A stretch of DNA of 64,000 nucleotides from Anthoceros angustus (lineage: Eukaryota > Plantae > Anthocerotophyta), in NCBI GenBank assembly GCA_010909165.1, contig VJWM01000227.1, forward strand, positions 62,001 through 126,000. The letters are read 5' to 3'. This document shows, in pieces, positions 12,908 through 36,444 of this stretch. Each line of letters starts with the position of its first letter. The stretch's first letter is position 1. The position numbers were made by a program, and so were the translations under genes. A model generated the notes under the pieces. The model was not told where the DNA came from. It did not search any database and saw only the letters and a list, made by a program, of their open reading frames with translations.

Positions 12908-14110
12908 ATGGGGATCGTGGAGAAAATCAAGGAGATCGAGGCCGAGATGGCCCGGACTCAGAAGAACAAGGCCACGGAGTACCACTTGGGGCAGCTCAAG
13001 GCTAAGATTGCCAAGCTGAGGACCCAGCTGCTGGAGCCGCCGAAAGGATCGACTGGAGCGGGGGATGGTTTCGAGGTGACTAAATTCGGGCATGGTCGGG
13101 TTGCGCTGATAGGGTTTCCTAGTGTGGGGAAGTCCACATTGCTGACCCTTCTTACGGGCACGCAGTCCGAAACAGCAGCGTATGAGTTCACAACCCTGAC
13201 ATGTATTCCCGGGATTATACATTACAACGATGCCAAGATACAACTTCTTGATCTGCCGGGTATTATTGAAGGAGCTTCGGAGGGGAAAGGTCGTGGACGG
13301 CAGGTTATCGCAGTGGCCAAGTCCTCTGATTTGGTTCTGATGGTTTTAGATGCTTCCAAGAGTGAGGGTCATAGGCAGATTCTGACCAGAGAGTTGGAAG
13401 CTGTGGGGTTGCGGCTTAATAAAAGTCCTCCTCAGATTTATTTCAAGAGGAAGAAGACAGGGGGCATTTCCTTCAACACCACAGCGGCCCTCACCCATGT
13501 AGATGAGAAGCTGTGCTATCAGATTCTGCACGAGTACAAGATCCACAATGCTGAGGTGCTGTTCAGGGAGGACGCCACAGTCGATGACCTGATTGATGTT
13601 ATTGAGGGAAACCGGAAGTACATCAAATGTGTGTACGTCTACAACAAGATTGATGTTGTGGGGATTGACGATGTTGACAGATTAGCCCGCCAGCCCAACT
13701 CCATCGTTATCAGCTGCAATCTCCAGCTGAACCTAGATAGACTATTGGCCAAGATGTGGGACGAGATGGGCCTTGTACGTGTTTACACGAAGCCGCAAGG
13801 TCAGCAACCTGATTTCTCTGAGCCGGTCGTTCTTTCTACTGACAGAGGAGGCTGTTCGGTGGAAGACTTCTGCAACCATATTCATAGGAGTTTACTGAGA
13901 GATGTGAAGTACGTCCTGATCTGGGGGACCAGCTCCAAGCATTACCCTCAACGGTGTGGGACTCAACATGTTCTGCACGACGAAGATGTGGTCCAGATAG
14001 TCAAGAAGAAGGAGAAGGAGGAGGACGGTGGAAGGGGAAGATTCAAGTCCCACACTACAGGCCCTGCCAGGATCTCTGATAGGGAGAAGAAGGCTCCTCT
14101 TAAGACTTAG
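12908..14110 (+). CDS. DRG2: Developmentally regulated GTP-binding protein, DRG2 type, intronless
   Basis: One 400-aa ORF: MGIVEKIKEIEAEMARTQKNKATEYHLGQLKAK, G1 GFPSVGKS, YEFTTLT, DLPG, NKID and a C-terminal TGS domain. Confidence 0.97.
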   Translation: MGIVEKIKEIEAEMARTQKNKATEYHLGQLKAKIAKLRTQLLEPPKGSTGAGDGFEVTKFGHGRVALIGFPSVGKSTLLTLLTGTQSETAAYEFTTLTCIPGIIHYNDAKIQLLDLPGIIEGASEGKGRGRQVIAVAKSSDLVLMVLDASKSEGHRQILTRELEAVGLRLNKSPPQIYFKRKKTGGISFNTTAALTHVDEKLCYQILHEYKIHNAEVLFREDATVDDLIDVIEGNRKYIKCVYVYNKIDVVGIDDVDRLARQPNSIVISCNLQLNLDRLLAKMWDEMGLVRVYTKPQGQQPDFSEPVVLSTDRGGCSVEDFCNHIHRSLLRDVKYVLIWGTSSKHYPQRCGTQHVLHDEDVVQIVKKKEKEEDGGRGRFKSHTTGPARISDREKKAPLKT

Positions 14111-28059: not shown

Positions 28060-28806
28060 TTAAGCCTGGAAGGCGGTGGGCTTCTGCACCAGGAAAGCCA
28101 CGACCTGCACCTGCCTGACGTTGTCGAAGCCGATGACCCGGATGAAGGACTCGGGGTAGGCCTTCCTGGCCTCCTGCACCTCGCGCAGCACCTGGGCCGG
28201 GTCGTTGGCGCCGAAGAGGGGCAGCTTCCACAGGGTGTAGTAGCGCCCGTCGTAGTAGCCAGGGCCGGCGTAGTGGGTCTTGGTCACGGAAGACACCTGC
28301 CAGGCGCACCACATTGCAACATTGCGAGCAACATTGTGAGACCGGCAGCGCGCAAAACATCACGCATGTACAGCACATTCCAGACAGCTGGTGGGCTTAC
28401 CGTGTCGAACTCGATGGCGGGGATGAGGTTCTTCTTGATGAGGAAGTCCACCTGCTTGTAGATCTGGTCGTCGGTGAGGGGCGGCAGGTACGACAGCGTC
28501 TCGAACTTGAGGTTGGTGTTGGGGTTCACCACCTGCGGCCACAGGAGCAGGGGCAGGAGCATCAGCATCAGCATTGGGCGCAACGCACGGCCGGCAGCGG
28601 GCTTGCGGGTGTCGGCGTACAAGGAAGGCGTTAGTGCGGCTGCCATTGGAGACGGTCTTGGCGGAGAGCGAGGAGCTGCCGATTCCGGCTCCCAGGGGCA
28701 GGGGAGCCAGGCGCAGGCCGGTGGCGGAAGACGCAGCCACGGCGCTGGGCCTGGAGACGCAGGACGCCGCGGCCAGAGTGGAGGACGCGGTGGCGAGGGC
28801 GGCCAT
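28060..28806 (-). CDS. RBCS: Rubisco small subunit, divergent, 3 exons (28806-28621, 28532-28401, 28296-28060)
   Basis: Ala/Ser-rich transit peptide ending [10 protein letters not shown]; [41 protein letters not shown]; strong C/G bias at third codon positions. Confidence 0.97.
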
Positions 28807-28891: not shown

Positions 28892-28899
28892 CTCTTATA
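28892..28899 (-). promoter_or_regulatory. Probable RbcS TATA box
   Basis: TATAAGAG on the minus strand about 90 bp upstream of the ATG. Confidence 0.45.
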
Positions 28900-29092
28900 T
28901 GTAGGTTGCGTTGCGGTCCAGATGCAGCGCACCGGGGACCAGGTGCGTTGTATGCTGTCCTTTCCTTTGTTGAATTGTTACATGTACCACTCCTACAACT
29001 GCCCTTCCCTTCATATGCCGTTGCTCCGGCACCACTTCCTCTCAAATCTATAAGGTATGATAGCCAACACGTTTGTTACTCATCTCTCAAGT

Positions 29093-29098: not shown

Positions 29099-29251
29099 CT
29101 TGCTTGGCTTAATCTGCTCAGGTGCGGCGTTACTTCTTTCCATATTATTAAATATATTCAATTAGTCTAAGTAATTTAAATATTAAAAATATTCTTAAGA
29201 TTATTTTTTTAAGCTCTTCTTTGCTTTTAACCTTTTGCGTATGTGCCTAGC

Positions 29252-29430
29252 AATAAAAAATTACAAGTGAATGAGCCACGCAACAAAGAATTACAACTGA
29301 ATGAGCCACGCAACAAAGAATTACAACTGAATGAGCCATACATCAAAGAATTACAACTGAATGAGCCACGCATCAAAGAATTACAATTGAATGAACCACG
29401 CAACAAAGAATTACAACTGAATGAACCAAG
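29252..29430. repeat. 30-bp minisatellite, 6 copies
   Basis: aacaaagaattacaactgaatgagccacgc repeated in tandem. Confidence 0.95.
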
Positions 29431-30129
29431 CAGCCTCACACACTCGGCTGACCTAATTAACAACCCTAGTATCCGTAGGGGAACAAGGGAGGGTGACAAT
29501 AACATGAGCCCAACATATCCCACCTTTCATTACCCTAAACATGTGAATGAAGTACCATGGCTTTTCCAAGCATTGTTCTAACCAAGTTTTTTATATTGTT
29601 GATCAATTGGTGATTTGAAGACTTTTATCCTTAGCTATATCGTTGACCAATCAATCATAAAGAGAATTTTGATATTGTTTAAACCCTTCACCAATAAAAA
29701 ATATTAAGATCTTATTATATTTTTCACCAATCGGTATTAGTTAGGTATAAAATAATTTTCTTCAACTTCCTCATAGCTATCCCAAATTCACAATCTCCTT
29801 CTCTCTACCCTTTTCCTTGGTATCTCTTCATTGTACAAATGGAGATGAGATGAGGCCACCCACAAGGGATGTGTTGACATAGGATATCTGTATGTCGACA
29901 AGGTATTTATAATATATTGTACAAAACACTAGCTTATTTTGAGGAAATAGATAATTACTAACAGCTTAAAAGCATGGCATCCGATCTATTGTATGATTTC
30001 TTAGGATGAGAAGATGCCATTGTCATATGAGAGCTAAAGTGATACCGTGGGATTGATGTCTTTGCCAGATCTTTACAAAAAGTCCGCATGATATGAGGAT
30101 ATAGAGAGAGCACTATGGTGTTCTCAAAG

Positions 30130-30658: not shown

Positions 30659-33265
30659 ATGCCCATGATACGTCTATGTTCACATCCCGCTCCCCGTTTG
30701 CACTTGCAGTTGCTCCAGGCTAAGGCGATGCGTCGGCGGGGACTACTGCGGTCCAACAATTTGGGTGTGTGTACAGGGCTTCTACGGGGAGCTCCCGCTC
30801 ACCTCATCTCAGGGAGTCAACCTCCGGCAAACAACCAAGCCGCGAGCATCTTCACTTTCGAGAAAATGTGTGGGTGGGGACGGGTTATCCAGCGATGGTC
30901 GTCGCCAGGAGCAGGAGCAGGCGCACTTGTGGCCACAATTTTCTCAGGATCCTAACATGTGGTGGGACAATAGACGAGATATGTTCAAGCCAGCTCGGGT
31001 TGATGAGCAGCTCGTTCCCTTGGATATGCACATGGGTCATGGTGCGTCTCCTTCCAAGTCGAGCTCCCCAGATAATCCTGAACCTGGGAGCCGTGCAGAA
31101 TTGGAAATGGGCTCGAGGTGCAGCGGTGTAAGGAGCCCAGCGCTCTTACTTCTGAGAAAATGTGTGGGTGAGGACGGGTTTTTCAACCTTGGTCGTCGCC
31201 AGGAGGAGGAGGAGGAGCAGGAGCACTTGTGGCAACAATTTTTTCAAGCCCTACCATGTGGTGGGACAACAGACGAGATAACAAGAGCGCCCATTCGCCT
31301 GACTTCCGGCGTAAGGGGTCTGGCGAGGTGCTGTGGTTAAACAACATGTTTAAGCAGACTTGGGTTGATGATCAGCTCGCTTCCTTGGATATGCTGATGG
31401 GTCATGGTGCCTCTCCTTTTGAGTCCAACTCTTGGTATAAGCCTGAACCTGGCAGGCGTGCATCGGAAATGGGCGTCGTTACGGCTGCAACGGTGAGCAC
31501 GTTATGTCAGCAAGGGAAGCTTTGTGAGGTCGTTGGAGCCCTGGATTCTGTGGTGCTGACAGACACTGCTATATCTCAGTCTCTGTTTTACAATGTGCTG
31601 AAACTGTGTACTTCTAAGAAGGATCGGGTTGTGGGGCCGACGAGTTCGTGACCTTACAGTGAAATATCGGGTCCGAGTCAGATGCATACTTGGGGAACCA
31701 TATCTTGCGCATGTATGCACGTGGTGTTAGTCTACAGGAGGCCATGGATGTGTTCACCAGGGTGGGCAAACCAGATGTCTTCATGTGGGGTTCCATAATC
31801 TCTGCATATGCTAAGCATGGGAAACCTAGCGAGGCCATACAACTGTACCATGAGATGCGTTGGTCAGGAGTGAAGGCAGATGCTCACGTCTTTGTAGCTG
31901 CCCTTCAAGCTTGCGCATTTGCGGCTGACTTGAAGTCTACCAGAAAAGTGCACTGCGATGTATTGGACAGTGGCATTTCTATTAACTTGTTTGTTGGCAC
32001 CAGCCTGGTGGACGTGTACGCAAAATGTGGTGAACTGAAAGATGCCCGCCAGGTTTTTGACAGCATGGCCACAAAGAATGTTGTGACATGGACGGCATTG
32101 ATTGCTGGGTATGCCGAGCAAGGGCTCGGACATGAGGCGCTTGTTCTATGTGGACAAATGGAGCAGGAGGGGCTGATTTTGGCTAACCATGTTACTTTTG
32201 CTTGCCTTCTGAACGCCTGTGCTAGGACTGGTACCTTACAGAAAGGCAGGCAGCTGCACTCACAGATTGTGGAACAAGGATTGCTGGATAACGTAGTGTT
32301 GGGCTTCTGCCTGGTGGACATGCATGCAAAGTGTGGTGAACTGAGAGACGCACGCCAGGTTTTTGACAGCATGGCAACAAAGAATGTGGTGACATGGAAT
32401 GCCCTGATATCTGCGTATGGTACTTGTGATGAAGGTCACAAGGCACTAGCTTGTTTTGAGGAGATGTTGGCTGAATGATACAACTTTTACTTGCCTTTTG
32501 GTAGCATACAGTCATGAGGGACTGGTCCACGAGGGTCGCAAGCACTTTGATTCGATGGCTGAACAGCATGGCTTCAAACCTACTATTGAGCATCACAATT
32601 GTATGGTTGATCTTCTTGGGCGTGCAGGCCATTTAGATGAGGCAGAGAAGATGCTTTTGTCATGTGAGGGCCAAATTGATGTTGTGGGCTTGACGTCTTT
32701 GTTGAATGCCTGCAAAAGTCACGGGGATATAGAGGGCAACGTGGTGTTTTGAAAGCATTGTTAGGCTGGCCCCCCAGGAGGCGTATGTGCTCATGGCCAA
32801 TGCCTATGCAGATGCAGGTAGGTGGACCGATGTAGATAGGATTGAAACACGTAGGAGGGTAGCAGGAGCTAATAAAAAACCTGCAGTGGCGAGCATTGAG
32901 GTGAATAAGCAGGTACATAGATTTTGGTGGGAGAGGAAGAGGATATTGCGCTCAAGGTAGAGAGCACAAATGCACGTCTGAAGCAGGAAGGAGGCCACGT
33001 TTCTCACAGAGTTGGTGTTGAAGCTGAGAAGGAAAAGGAAGATGCGCTTTGTGGGCATGCTGAGAAGCTAGCTCTGGCGTTTGGTCTGTTGAACACTCCG
33101 AGTGGGACACCTCTGGTGGTAACGAAGAATCTACGCATGTGCAGTGACTGCCACAGTTCCACAGGGATCATGTCAAGGCTTGAACAGAGGTACATTGTTG
33201 TAAGGGATGGGTACCGGGTGCATCGATTCGCAGTTGGTTGTTGCAGTTGTGAGGGTCGACCGTGA
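30659..33265 (+). CDS. PLS-class PPR protein with N-terminal OSB-like PDF motifs and a C-terminal DYW:KP (GRP) deaminase domain; several frameshifts (errors or pseudogene)
   Basis: Arg-rich N-terminus; WWDNR..PDF..LWL motif; about 10 P/L/S repeats, E1 and E2; KKPAVASIEVNKQVHRF, HAEKLA, CSDCH and terminal CSCEGRP*. Confidence 0.85.
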
Positions 33266-33598
33266 GAATAATGAAGGACTACCCAATGCTCAAGTGTGTA
33301 GGTACGCCAGAGAAAGTTGCTCTCTCTTTTTGGGGTAAATGTGCGTGCTTAACCCCATCCCTGGCTAAACGGACACGTGAACGTGGATTGCTAACTCTGC
33401 CCCTATCGAACAGGGAGAATCAAAATGGAATGAATCTCTCTCGGTCGAGTGAAATCAAGATAGTTTAGACCGGTTTTCTTGAGGCTCGTTGCGTGGCATT
33501 ATGGGCTTGAAAAGATTTTTATGGCATTAGGGGCTTGAAAAGATTAGTTGGACAAAGTTGAAGGAATATTTCACGTTGAAGGAAGTGCAGGTTGTCTT

Positions 33599-34750
33599 GA
33601 GGAGATGTTGGCTGAATGATACAACTTTTACTTGCCTTTTGGTAGCATACAGTCATGAGGGACTGGTCCACGAGGGTCGCAAGCACTTTGATTCGATGGC
33701 TGAACAGCATGGCTTCAAACCTACTATTGAGCATCACAATTGTATGGTTGATCTTCTTGGGCGTGCAGGCCATTTAGATGAGGCAGAGAAGATGCTTTTG
33801 TCATGTGAGGGCCAAATTGATGTTGTGGGCTTGACGTCTTTGTTAAATGCCTACAAAAGTCACGGGGATATGGAGAGGGCAACGTGGTGTTTTGAAAGAA
33901 TTGTTAGGCTGGCCCCCCAGGAGGCGTATGTGCTCATGGCCCATGCCTATGCAGATGCAGGTAGGTGGACCGATGTAGATAGGATTGAAACACGTAGGAG
34001 GGTAGCAGGAGCTAATAAAAAACCTGCAGTGGCGAGCATTGAGGTGAATAAGCAGGTACATAGATTTTTGGTGGGAGAGAGGAAAGAGGATATTGCGCTC
34101 AAGGCAGAGAGCACAAATGCACGGCTGAAGCAGGAAGGTGGCCACGTTTCTCACAGAGTTGGTGTTGAAGCTAGAGAAGGAAAAAGAAGATGCGCTTTGC
34201 TGGCATGCTGAGAAGCTTGCTCTGGCGTTTGGTCTGTTGAACACTCCGAGTGGGACACCTCTGGTGTTAACGAAGAATCGACGCATGTGCAGTGACTGCC
34301 ACAGTTCCACAGGGATCATGTCAAGGCTTGAACAGAGGTACATTGTTGTAAGGGATGGGTACCGGGTGCATCGATTCGCAGTTGGTTGTTGCAGTTGTGA
34401 GGGTCGACCGTGAGAATAATGAAGGACTACCCAATGCTCAAGTGTGTAGGTACGCCAGAGAAAGTTGCTCTCTCTTTTTGGGGTAAATGTGCGTGCTTAA
34501 CCCCATCCCTGGCTAAACGGACACGTGAACGTGGATTGCTAACTCTGCCCCTATCGAACAGGGAGAATCAAAATGGAATGAATCTCTCTCGGTCGAGTGA
34601 AATCAAGATAGTTTAGACCGGTTTTCTTGAGGCTCAGTGTACGTGGCATTATGGGCTTGAAAAGATTTTTATGGCATTAGGGGCTTGAAAGATTAGTTGG
34701 ACAAAGTTGAAGGAATATTTCACGTTGAAGGGAAGTGCAGGTTGTCTTGA
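33599..34750 (+). repeat. Tandem duplicate (about 1.15 kb) of 32456-33598: PPR C-terminus, DYW domain and start of gypsy pol
   Basis: Near-identical sequence joined at a ttga microhomology; second GRP-ending DYW ORF at 34138-34413. Confidence 0.9.
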
Positions 34751-36444
34751 ATGAGTTCAAGGACTTGATGTCTGATGAGTTATCTCCTTTACCTCCTAGA
34801 AGAATTGAAGATTATGAGATTGATCAGAAGACAGGAAGTACACTGCCTTCAAGAGCATCGTATAGATTGTCGCAGGATGAGCTACAAGGGCTGAAGAGAT
34901 AGATGTCTAGCCCTACTAGCCAAGGGCTATGTAAGAATCTTTAAGTCCCCATTTGGTACGCCAATGTTGTTTACGTGCAAGAAGAATGGAGGATTGAGAT
35001 TTTGCTTGGATTACATAGCACTCAATTAGATTACAGTGAAGAATTCTGATCTTTTGCCAAGCATGGATGATGACAGATTGAGAGGTGCTAAGTATTTCAC
35101 CAAGCTGGATTTAATGGCAGGCTATTACCAGATTCGCATCGTAGAAGGATATGAATACAAGACTATTTGTAGAACAAGGTATGGATCTTTTGAGTTCTTG
35201 GTCATGCCATTTGGACTCACTAATACACCAGCCACATTTCAGGCTCTCAAGAATACTATATTCAAAGATCTGATGGATGAGTGTATTGTGATCTACTTGG
35301 ATGACATCATGATATACAGTTCTACCTTGGAAGAGCATGTCCAATACTTTGAGGAAAGTGTTATAGAAGTTAAGAGCAAATTCTTTGTTCTTAACTAAAA
35401 CAAAGTACTACTTTGTGAAGAAAGAGATAGACTTCCTCGAATTCATTGTCTTTGCGGATGGTATCAGGATAGATTCTGGTAAGGTAAAGGCCATACAGAG
35501 TTGGTTGCCGCCAAAGAATGTGCACGAGGTGTGTATGTTTTTTAGATTGGCTAGCGTATATAGAAGATTTGTACCGATGTTTGCCAAGATTACTGCCCCA
35601 TGAAGTGATCTCTTGAAGAAAGTGAAGGCTTGGAAGTGGGATGGAGATTGTCAAAGGGCATTCGAGTTTCTGAAGTTGAAACTTAACACTACCCCAGTAT
35701 TGGCAATCTATGATCCGAAGAAGGATATAGAAGTATATACTGATGCGTCAAATATTGCAATTGGCGGAGTGCTCATGCAAGAAGGTAGGCCAGTGGCTTA
35801 CAAGTCAAGGAAGCTGCATGAATATGAAAGAAAGTATCCTACTTATGAAAAGGAGATGAATGCTGTCATCAATTGTCTCAAGATTTGAAGACATTATGTT
35901 CTAGGAAGATCTTTTGTGTTGTACACAGACAAAGTAAGCAAGAGCTTTTTTACTATTAGTTGCGACTAAGTGCTAGACAAGCTAGAGGGCAACATTTCCT
36001 AGCAATGTATGATGTGTTTATCAAGTACAAGCAAGGGAAGGAGAATCTCGTGGTAGATACCTTGAGTCTCAAATAGAGTTTGAGTTTAATAACTGCTTTT
36101 ACGTTGAAGAGACCTAAGCTAGCTGCAACACAGCTGGTGATCGAACCAAGGAACACTCTCACACAGATCAAGGAAGCTTATTTGCAAGATCCATTGGTAC
36201 AACATTGGATCAATGAAGTGGAGCGACCGGGATCTAAGTTTAAGCTTAGGGATGGCTTGTTCATGTTCAAGCAAAGCAAGATTTGTGATTCCTGATTCTC
36301 AAGAGTTGAAAAGGAAGCTGCTTGCAGAGTGTCATGATGTGCCAAGTGCAGGTCATCGAGGGATTGACCCAACTTATGAGAAAGTTGAGAAAGCTATTTT
36401 ATTGGCCTAGAATGTATAAGCATTTTGTAGAGTATGTTAAGTCT

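Follow-up and report, generated by a model that had tools for sequence, protein, structure and literature searches.

No other single protein takes up as much of a plant's investment as Rubisco. Isoforms that spare sulfur in abundant proteins are reportedly known elsewhere, namely LHCBM9 of Chlamydomonas, the cpc3 phycocyanin set of cyanobacteria and the sulfur-sparing proteins of yeast. What defines them is that sulfur limitation induces them while paralogues that contain sulfur exist alongside, and no Rubisco subunit is among them. For the Rubisco small subunit, RbcS, there is precedent for distinct isoforms in one genome, in the form of the hornwort RbcS-STAR and the T-type RbcS (tobacco 'clone 512-like', rice OsRbcS1). 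Hornworts possess several genes for RbcS. Five RbcS loci have been described in Anthoceros agrestis, four of them seen by mass spectrometry, and one of these four belongs to a hyperoxia-responsive cluster (10.1101/2025.05.05.652161; 10.1101/2023.10.23.563637), and one A. agrestis RbcS is the RbcS-STAR linker isoform (PMC13655443). The five loci behave differently in proteomic analyses, with some RBCS homologues rising only under hyperoxia (10.1101/2025.05.05.652161).

We analysed a stretch of 64,000 nt, hereafter the window, and the RbcS encoded in it. Like LHCBM9, the cpc3 set and the yeast isoforms, this RbcS is a version, without Cys and Met, of a protein that is generally abundant, and the residues that define fold and function are kept. 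It differs from them in being additionally depleted in Trp. The long C-terminal extension with coiled-coil helices that characterises RbcS-STAR is absent, and in our tree the window protein falls outside the group formed by the T-type RbcS of Nicotiana and Amborella. Both of these isoform types keep Cys and Met, whereas the window protein has neither. Full-text literature searches returned no description of a sulfur-sparing, sulfur-depleted or Cys/Met-free RbcS, and none of LHCBM9 or elemental sparing in combination with bryophytes or Rubisco. The sulfur-free RbcS is a real and unusual variant that has apparently gone undescribed; isoforms that spare sulfur are already known as a kind, and so are RbcS isoforms with specialised roles.

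The gene was rebuilt from the sequence as three exons on the minus strand, at 28806-28060. It is the only RbcS copy in the 64,000-nt window, where tblastn detected no second one. Exon 1 (28621..28806) opens with the ATG at 28806 and encodes a 60-aa chloroplast transit peptide followed by the presumed mature residues F61 and L62. It is separated by intron 1 (28533..28620; 88 nt, GT..AG) from exon 2 (28401..28532), whose 44 codons specify mature residues 3-46 (VVNPNTN...IPAIEFDT). Intron 2 (28297..28400; 104 nt, GT..AG) precedes exon 3 (28060..28296), with 78 codons for mature residues 47-124 and a TAA stop at 28062-28060. The spliced coding sequence of 555 nt is in frame and yields a 184-aa precursor. 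The donor of intron 1 (CTT/GTACGC, with the slash at the splice junction) is in phase 0. It separates mature codons 2 and 3, which is where intron 1 of RbcS is conserved, after F-L here and after F-N in the gene of the liverwort Calypogeia fissa. As the length of intron 1 is not a multiple of 3, its retention would shift the frame, and splicing is thus needed to join the RbcS domain. Retention of intron 1 or use of an alternative acceptor that would restore Met was ruled out, given this frame shift and the lack of a usable in-frame acceptor. The leading M in the translations of exons starting with GTG is an effect of translation with table 11 and corresponds to no real Met.

The 60-aa leader is rich in Ser and Ala, and its end aligns with those of other streptophyte RbcS. 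The mature start was placed at F61 in analogy to the canonical cleavage site between Cys and Met; cleavage one residue earlier, leaving an Ala N-terminus, would be equally possible. A Phe exposed at the N-terminus would make a candidate N-degron for ClpS1. Counted from F61, the mature chain has 124 aa, an ordinary length, and its stop comes five residues past the conserved KP.

Family membership was assessed exon by exon. Exon 2 matched Pfam PF00101 (RuBisCO_small) with an E value of 6e-9 over profile positions 1-34, and exon 3 with an E value of 3e-21 over positions 38-97, both above the gathering score. RbcS chains in the PDB were matched with E values down to 1e-12 for exon 2 and 5e-30 for exon 3. 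Near-invariant columns were defined as those conserved in at least 90% of a 68-sequence RbcS set; 33 of the 36 are kept, and the three exceptions (Y32F, W66Y and M68L) are all conservative. With its canonical GT..AG introns, PF00101 matches and retention of these columns, the gene has the intact frame, splice sites and core motifs that the initial annotation had claimed. The preference for codons ending in C or G stated there is borne out as well, with a GC3 of 0.92, a codon bias of the kind expected of a heavily expressed gene. In the four neighbouring open reading frames (ORFs), GC3 ranges from 0.47 to 0.69 and the Cys+Met content is ordinary, at 3-7%, indicating that neither the strong codon bias nor the depletion of sulfur is a regional property and that both are specific to the gene. 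Judged from these features, the RbcS gene of the window looks functional.

A sulfur-poor relative was also modelled. A model built from a deep alignment reached a pLDDT of 82 and adopted the RbcS fold, with a Z score of 17 to solved RbcS; an earlier model from a shallow alignment (pLDDT 41) was unusable. There was no hornwort entry among the PDB structural matches listed for the modelled relative. The best PDB sequence match was 9pvb_M, whose motifs were found in tobacco 'clone 512-like' (T-type) RbcS among the fetched proteins, and these tobacco motifs ruled out that 9pvb_M is a hornwort chain. A full-text literature search for 9CHZ, 9PVB and other PDB codes found nothing.

The whole 184-aa precursor contains one Met, the initiator, one Cys, at residue 16 within the transit peptide, and one Trp. 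Since residues 17-184 include neither Cys nor Met, processing anywhere after residue 16 would give a sulfur-free product. The 124-aa chain from F61 thus has no Cys, no Met and a single Trp, precisely as the initial annotation had described it. We compared this composition with that of 219 fetched homologues covering nearly the whole mature domain. Their Cys+Met counts range from 1 to 14, mostly 5 to 10, and none of the 219 has zero, so that relative to its family the window RbcS shows a depletion of the sulfur-sparing type. Normal streptophyte RbcS have 4-11 Cys+Met, and each chain of canonical bryophyte RbcS contains 9-11 S atoms. We estimated how probable a chain without Cys and Met would be from the column-wise residue frequencies of 49 canonical streptophyte RbcS; with columns drawn independently of one another, the value was approximately 10^-7.3 (~5e-8). 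Among 200,000 simulated chimeras, zero had no Cys+Met and the minimum was two. By these comparisons of sequences, the window RbcS truly lacks sulfur, to a degree that is extreme within its family and not a product of chance. GC-biased mutation was rejected as the sole cause: it fits the changes from Met to Leu or Val, but those from Cys to Ala and from Trp to Tyr or Val need two base changes.

The replacements were then compared, site by site, with canonical RbcS and with seven sulfur-poor sequences of a leafy-liverwort group, described below. M1F, W4V, M73L (Leu in 11/49 canonical sequences) and C76A (Ala in 5/49) are shared with that group. C41A (Ala in 4/49 canonical sequences) and C111V are found in 5/7 of its members, as is the state of site 96, which is Ser in the window protein and Cys in about half of canonical RbcS. 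M68L occurs in one of the seven, and so does C89A (Ala in 7/49 canonical sequences). W38L and W66Y are absent from the group; Leu is found at site 38 in eight other sequences, and Trp at site 66 is invariant in 56/56 other sequences. Every substitution listed in the initial annotation is present in the alignment. Altogether three of the four conserved Trp are replaced (W4V, W38L, W66Y). Taken singly, none of the replacements is remarkable, as all of the residues concerned turn up here and there in ordinary RbcS.

The canonical start of the mature protein, Met-x-Val-Trp, is also altered, F-L-V-V taking the place of M-Q/K-V-W. Met1 is present in 46/49 canonical RbcS, and in seed plants this mature N-terminal Met is N-methylated. 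The Met-x-Val-Trp start is a hallmark of RbcS and no requirement for it. In the RbcS of the zygnematophyte Spirogloea muscicola (P0168), the mature start reads ..NA/F-L-V-W instead of ..C/M-x-V-W (slashes marking the cleavage site), while 5 Cys and 2 Met are kept, indicating that the change from Met1 to Phe can arise without a general loss of sulfur.

Database searches yielded distant relatives. The best representatives in a 50%-clustered library were 55-67% identical over exon 3, nothing closer than 66% identity was found in a 90% clustered database, and a metagenome scan with exon 3 gave relatives at 51-58% identity only. A profile search that included the window's exons recovered no close orthologue, and a search with the exon-2 region gave one match, a Closterium-type sequence from a Leptophrys transcriptome. 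The nearest sequences are 60-66% identical to the window protein and belong to one group, in which the mature part begins with F-N-V-V-N-P. This FNVVNP group (n = 7) comprises two loci (CAM6103177.1, which is P0159, and P0157) from Calypogeia fissa, a leafy liverwort, and five JGI or Logan contigs (P0151, P0155, P0156, P0158 and P0004), the latter being ~1 kb long and thus transcript-sized. The initial annotation knew of no such RbcS. That holds for the literature, as full-text searches returned no description; in sequence collections, by contrast, the sulfur-poor RbcS of leafy liverworts share replacements with the window protein.

The window protein has in common with the FNVVNP group the end of the transit peptide (..SNGSR.NA/F) as well as F1, V4, A41, L73, A76 and V111/V112. 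The liverwort sequences are likewise low in sulfur, yet 1-5 Cys+Met remain in them, compared with none in the window protein, and they keep W38 and W66, together with M68 in 6/7 and C89 in 6/7, all of which the window protein lacks. The C. fissa gene has no intron 2 at all, and the position of its intron 1 matches that in the window gene to the codon. At the C. fissa locus (CBCUJL010000007.1; L001 10001-11057), intron 1 is 502 nt long and the GC content is 42%. No canonical Calypogeia RbcS appeared among the matches listed, so this liverwort may have the sulfur-poor form as its ordinary RbcS. If so, this would fit a constitutive trait better than a stress isoform. The annotated protein Marchantia polymorpha Mp_4g06040 (P0153, 248 aa) reads as a complete RbcS that continues in frame into a truncated copy of the mature domain, a 16-residue motif run occurring twice; a single gene model has probably fused two tandem genes here.

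A tree computed from all columns places the window protein as sister to the FNVVNP group, with support values of 99/95. Removal of the 15 Cys/Met/Trp columns and of the transit peptide left this grouping without support, and with the trait columns removed, an approximately unbiased (AU) test did not reject a clade of the FNVVNP group with the window protein (p 0.6). In the mature part, the window protein shares seven rare states with the group, all of them in trait columns and none elsewhere. Given the lost support, the AU result and the restriction of shared states to the trait, shared sulfur-poor ancestry and convergence are inseparable in these alignments, and convergence with leafy liverworts would be just as likely as common descent. 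That leafy liverworts have the same replacements and no other derived states in common with the window protein nevertheless suggests that the same outcome may have been reached twice; convergence, if that is what occurred, argues for selection. The terminal branch of the window protein is long, at 0.54 compared with a median of 0.11 for all columns, and it measures 0.26 without the trait columns.

The upstream region was scanned for promoter motifs. A TATA-like sequence, CATATAAG, lies at 28893..28900 on the minus strand, ~95 nt upstream of the ATG, and is a putative core promoter as judged by its match to the consensus only. On the same strand, a motif scan identified an I-box (GATAAG, 29098-29093) and an ACGT core (29072-29069), near -290 and -266 and 26 nt apart. 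They resemble the I-box/G-box pair of light-regulated RbcS promoters, a weak likeness as ~0.5 I-box per kb is expected by chance. It is plausible that this is the RbcS promoter region, with the motifs occurring at chance level. A motif scan detected no SURE motif (GAGAC) within 1 kb upstream of the gene, an observation that weighs little either way. Two small sequencing runs labelled 'RNA?', from two organisms, contained 14-17% of the 31-mers that make up the gene region, a share that fits close relatives or partial transcripts. Further upstream, ~450-630 nt from the RbcS start codon, an AT-rich intergenic segment (29250-29432) consists of a 30-bp unit repeated 6.1 times with 91% matches; it may be a promoter-proximal minisatellite or the remnant of a mobile element.

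The window as a whole is characterised by short introns and a GC content of ~50%. A pentatricopeptide repeat (PPR) gene located 5 kb from RbcS encodes a KPAVA motif and ends in GRP, both hallmarks of DYW:KP proteins, the U-to-C editing type. PPR proteins of this type have been reported in hornworts, ferns and lycophytes and are not known from liverworts, and their presence sets the genome of the window apart from those of leafy liverworts. A tandem duplication has doubled the 3' part of the PPR gene (32456-33468 and 33558-34616), with near-identical sets of ORFs. Both copies end in a DYW:KP-type tail (...CSCEGRP) followed by an identical 68-aa ORF, and KPAVA is found in the second copy. Just downstream of this duplication, at 35036-35650, are ORFs with a reverse-transcriptase-like motif (..YFTKLDL.AGYYQI.., judged by eye), which suggests a fragment of an LTR retrotransposon. 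On the other side of RbcS, positions 12908-14110 hold an intronless 400-aa ORF for a DRG/Obg-type GTPase with MMR_HSR1, MMR_HSR1_Xtn and TGS domains, for which a search of the public gene-call collection gave no exact match.

What could account for an RbcS devoid of sulfur? We give about an even chance to the reading that the RbcS is functional and that selection has rid it of sulfur. The precursor would be imported into the chloroplast and its transit peptide removed, leaving a subunit without sulfur and with a single Trp, in which each canonical sulfur site is occupied by the nearest non-sulfur side chain (M1F, C41A, M68L, M73L, C76A, C89A and C111V). Together with RbcL, the subunit would be expected to form an ordinary L8S8 enzyme, since the residues responsible for the fold and contacts of RbcS are retained. 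It may be the constitutive small subunit or a conditionally expressed isoform; the initial annotation proposed a paralogue that remodels Rubisco under sulfur limitation or ROS stress, an interpretation that our analysis supports in part. The selective cause would be elemental sparing, that is, the removal of sulfur from what is presumably one of the plant's most abundant proteins. According to Cys and Met counts, RbcS holds approximately one-third of the sulfur of the holoenzyme, assuming ~18 S per RbcL, and swapping out a canonical bryophyte RbcS would cut the total by that fraction. The sulfur-sparing reading is plausible. Sulfur economy leaves W4V, W38L and W66Y unexplained, however, which counts against it.

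The sulfur-free protein might instead be the default RbcS of its lineage, from which non-catalytic Cys, Met and Trp drifted away without selective meaning. Each replacement is indeed seen in some canonical RbcS (A41 in 4/49, L73 in 11/49, A76 in 5/49 and A89 in 7/49), Cys+Met already ranges from 4 to 11 in normal streptophyte RbcS, and C. fissa has sulfur-poor RbcS only among the matches listed. Replacement of two central Trp by Phe in a cyanobacterial RbcS is said to be tolerated with a modest loss of activity, which would also be consistent with drift. Yet the joint loss of all sulfur positions has a probability of ~5e-8 under independence, not one of the 219 homologues has reached zero Cys+Met, and the end state seemingly arose twice. 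Moreover, the Cys+Met content of the neighbouring proteins is normal, at 3-7%. We therefore regard drift to a sulfur-free default as unlikely.

Selection might also have acted against oxidisable residues, namely Cys, Met and Trp, under hyperoxia, high light or desiccation. Such an oxidation-tolerant RbcS would reduce disulfide cross-linking, Met and Trp oxidation, and oxidative turnover of Rubisco. This explanation has the merit of accounting for the three Trp losses, including that of W66, which is invariant in 56 other sequences, and the A. agrestis RBCS homologues that rise only under hyperoxia (10.1101/2025.05.05.652161) are in line with it. However, with 8 Tyr and 1 His, the window protein is within the ranges of the other sequences (5-10 and 0-4, respectively), and W66Y even adds an oxidisable Tyr. 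The sulfur-poor RbcS of liverworts keep W38, W66 and W69, and nothing links the window gene to the hyperoxia-induced Anthoceros locus. Protection from oxidation as the driving force thus seems quite unlikely to us.

Finally, that the gene is a decaying, non-functional copy losing its conserved residues is highly improbable: it sits on the long terminal branch described above and protein-database searches returned no identical or near-identical protein, but its frame is open, its splice sites are canonical, 33 of 36 near-invariant positions are kept, its changes are conservative, its GC3 is 0.92, and Selaginella and Klebsormidium, which are isolated lineages, have equally long branches.

Selection for a sulfur-free RbcS might extend beyond this gene. 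It may be part of a coordinated sulfur-free photosynthetic set in bryophytes that arose convergently in hornworts and leafy liverworts and is either induced by sulfur limitation or the default in nutrient-poor habitats, a proposal that we put forward tentatively and consider rather doubtful. Such a set would be the land-plant version of the sulfur-sparing programmes of algae and cyanobacteria. If the reading of the window gene itself is correct, neither the conserved Cys and Met of RbcS nor two of its three central Trp would be needed for a working enzyme. The protein would then offer a redox-inert RbcS scaffold for Rubisco engineering and a tool to test the roles of RbcS thiols and of N-terminal Met methylation in regulation and turnover. 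It would also mean that elemental sparing, which has been documented to date in algae, cyanobacteria and yeast, may operate in the photosynthetic machinery of land plants.
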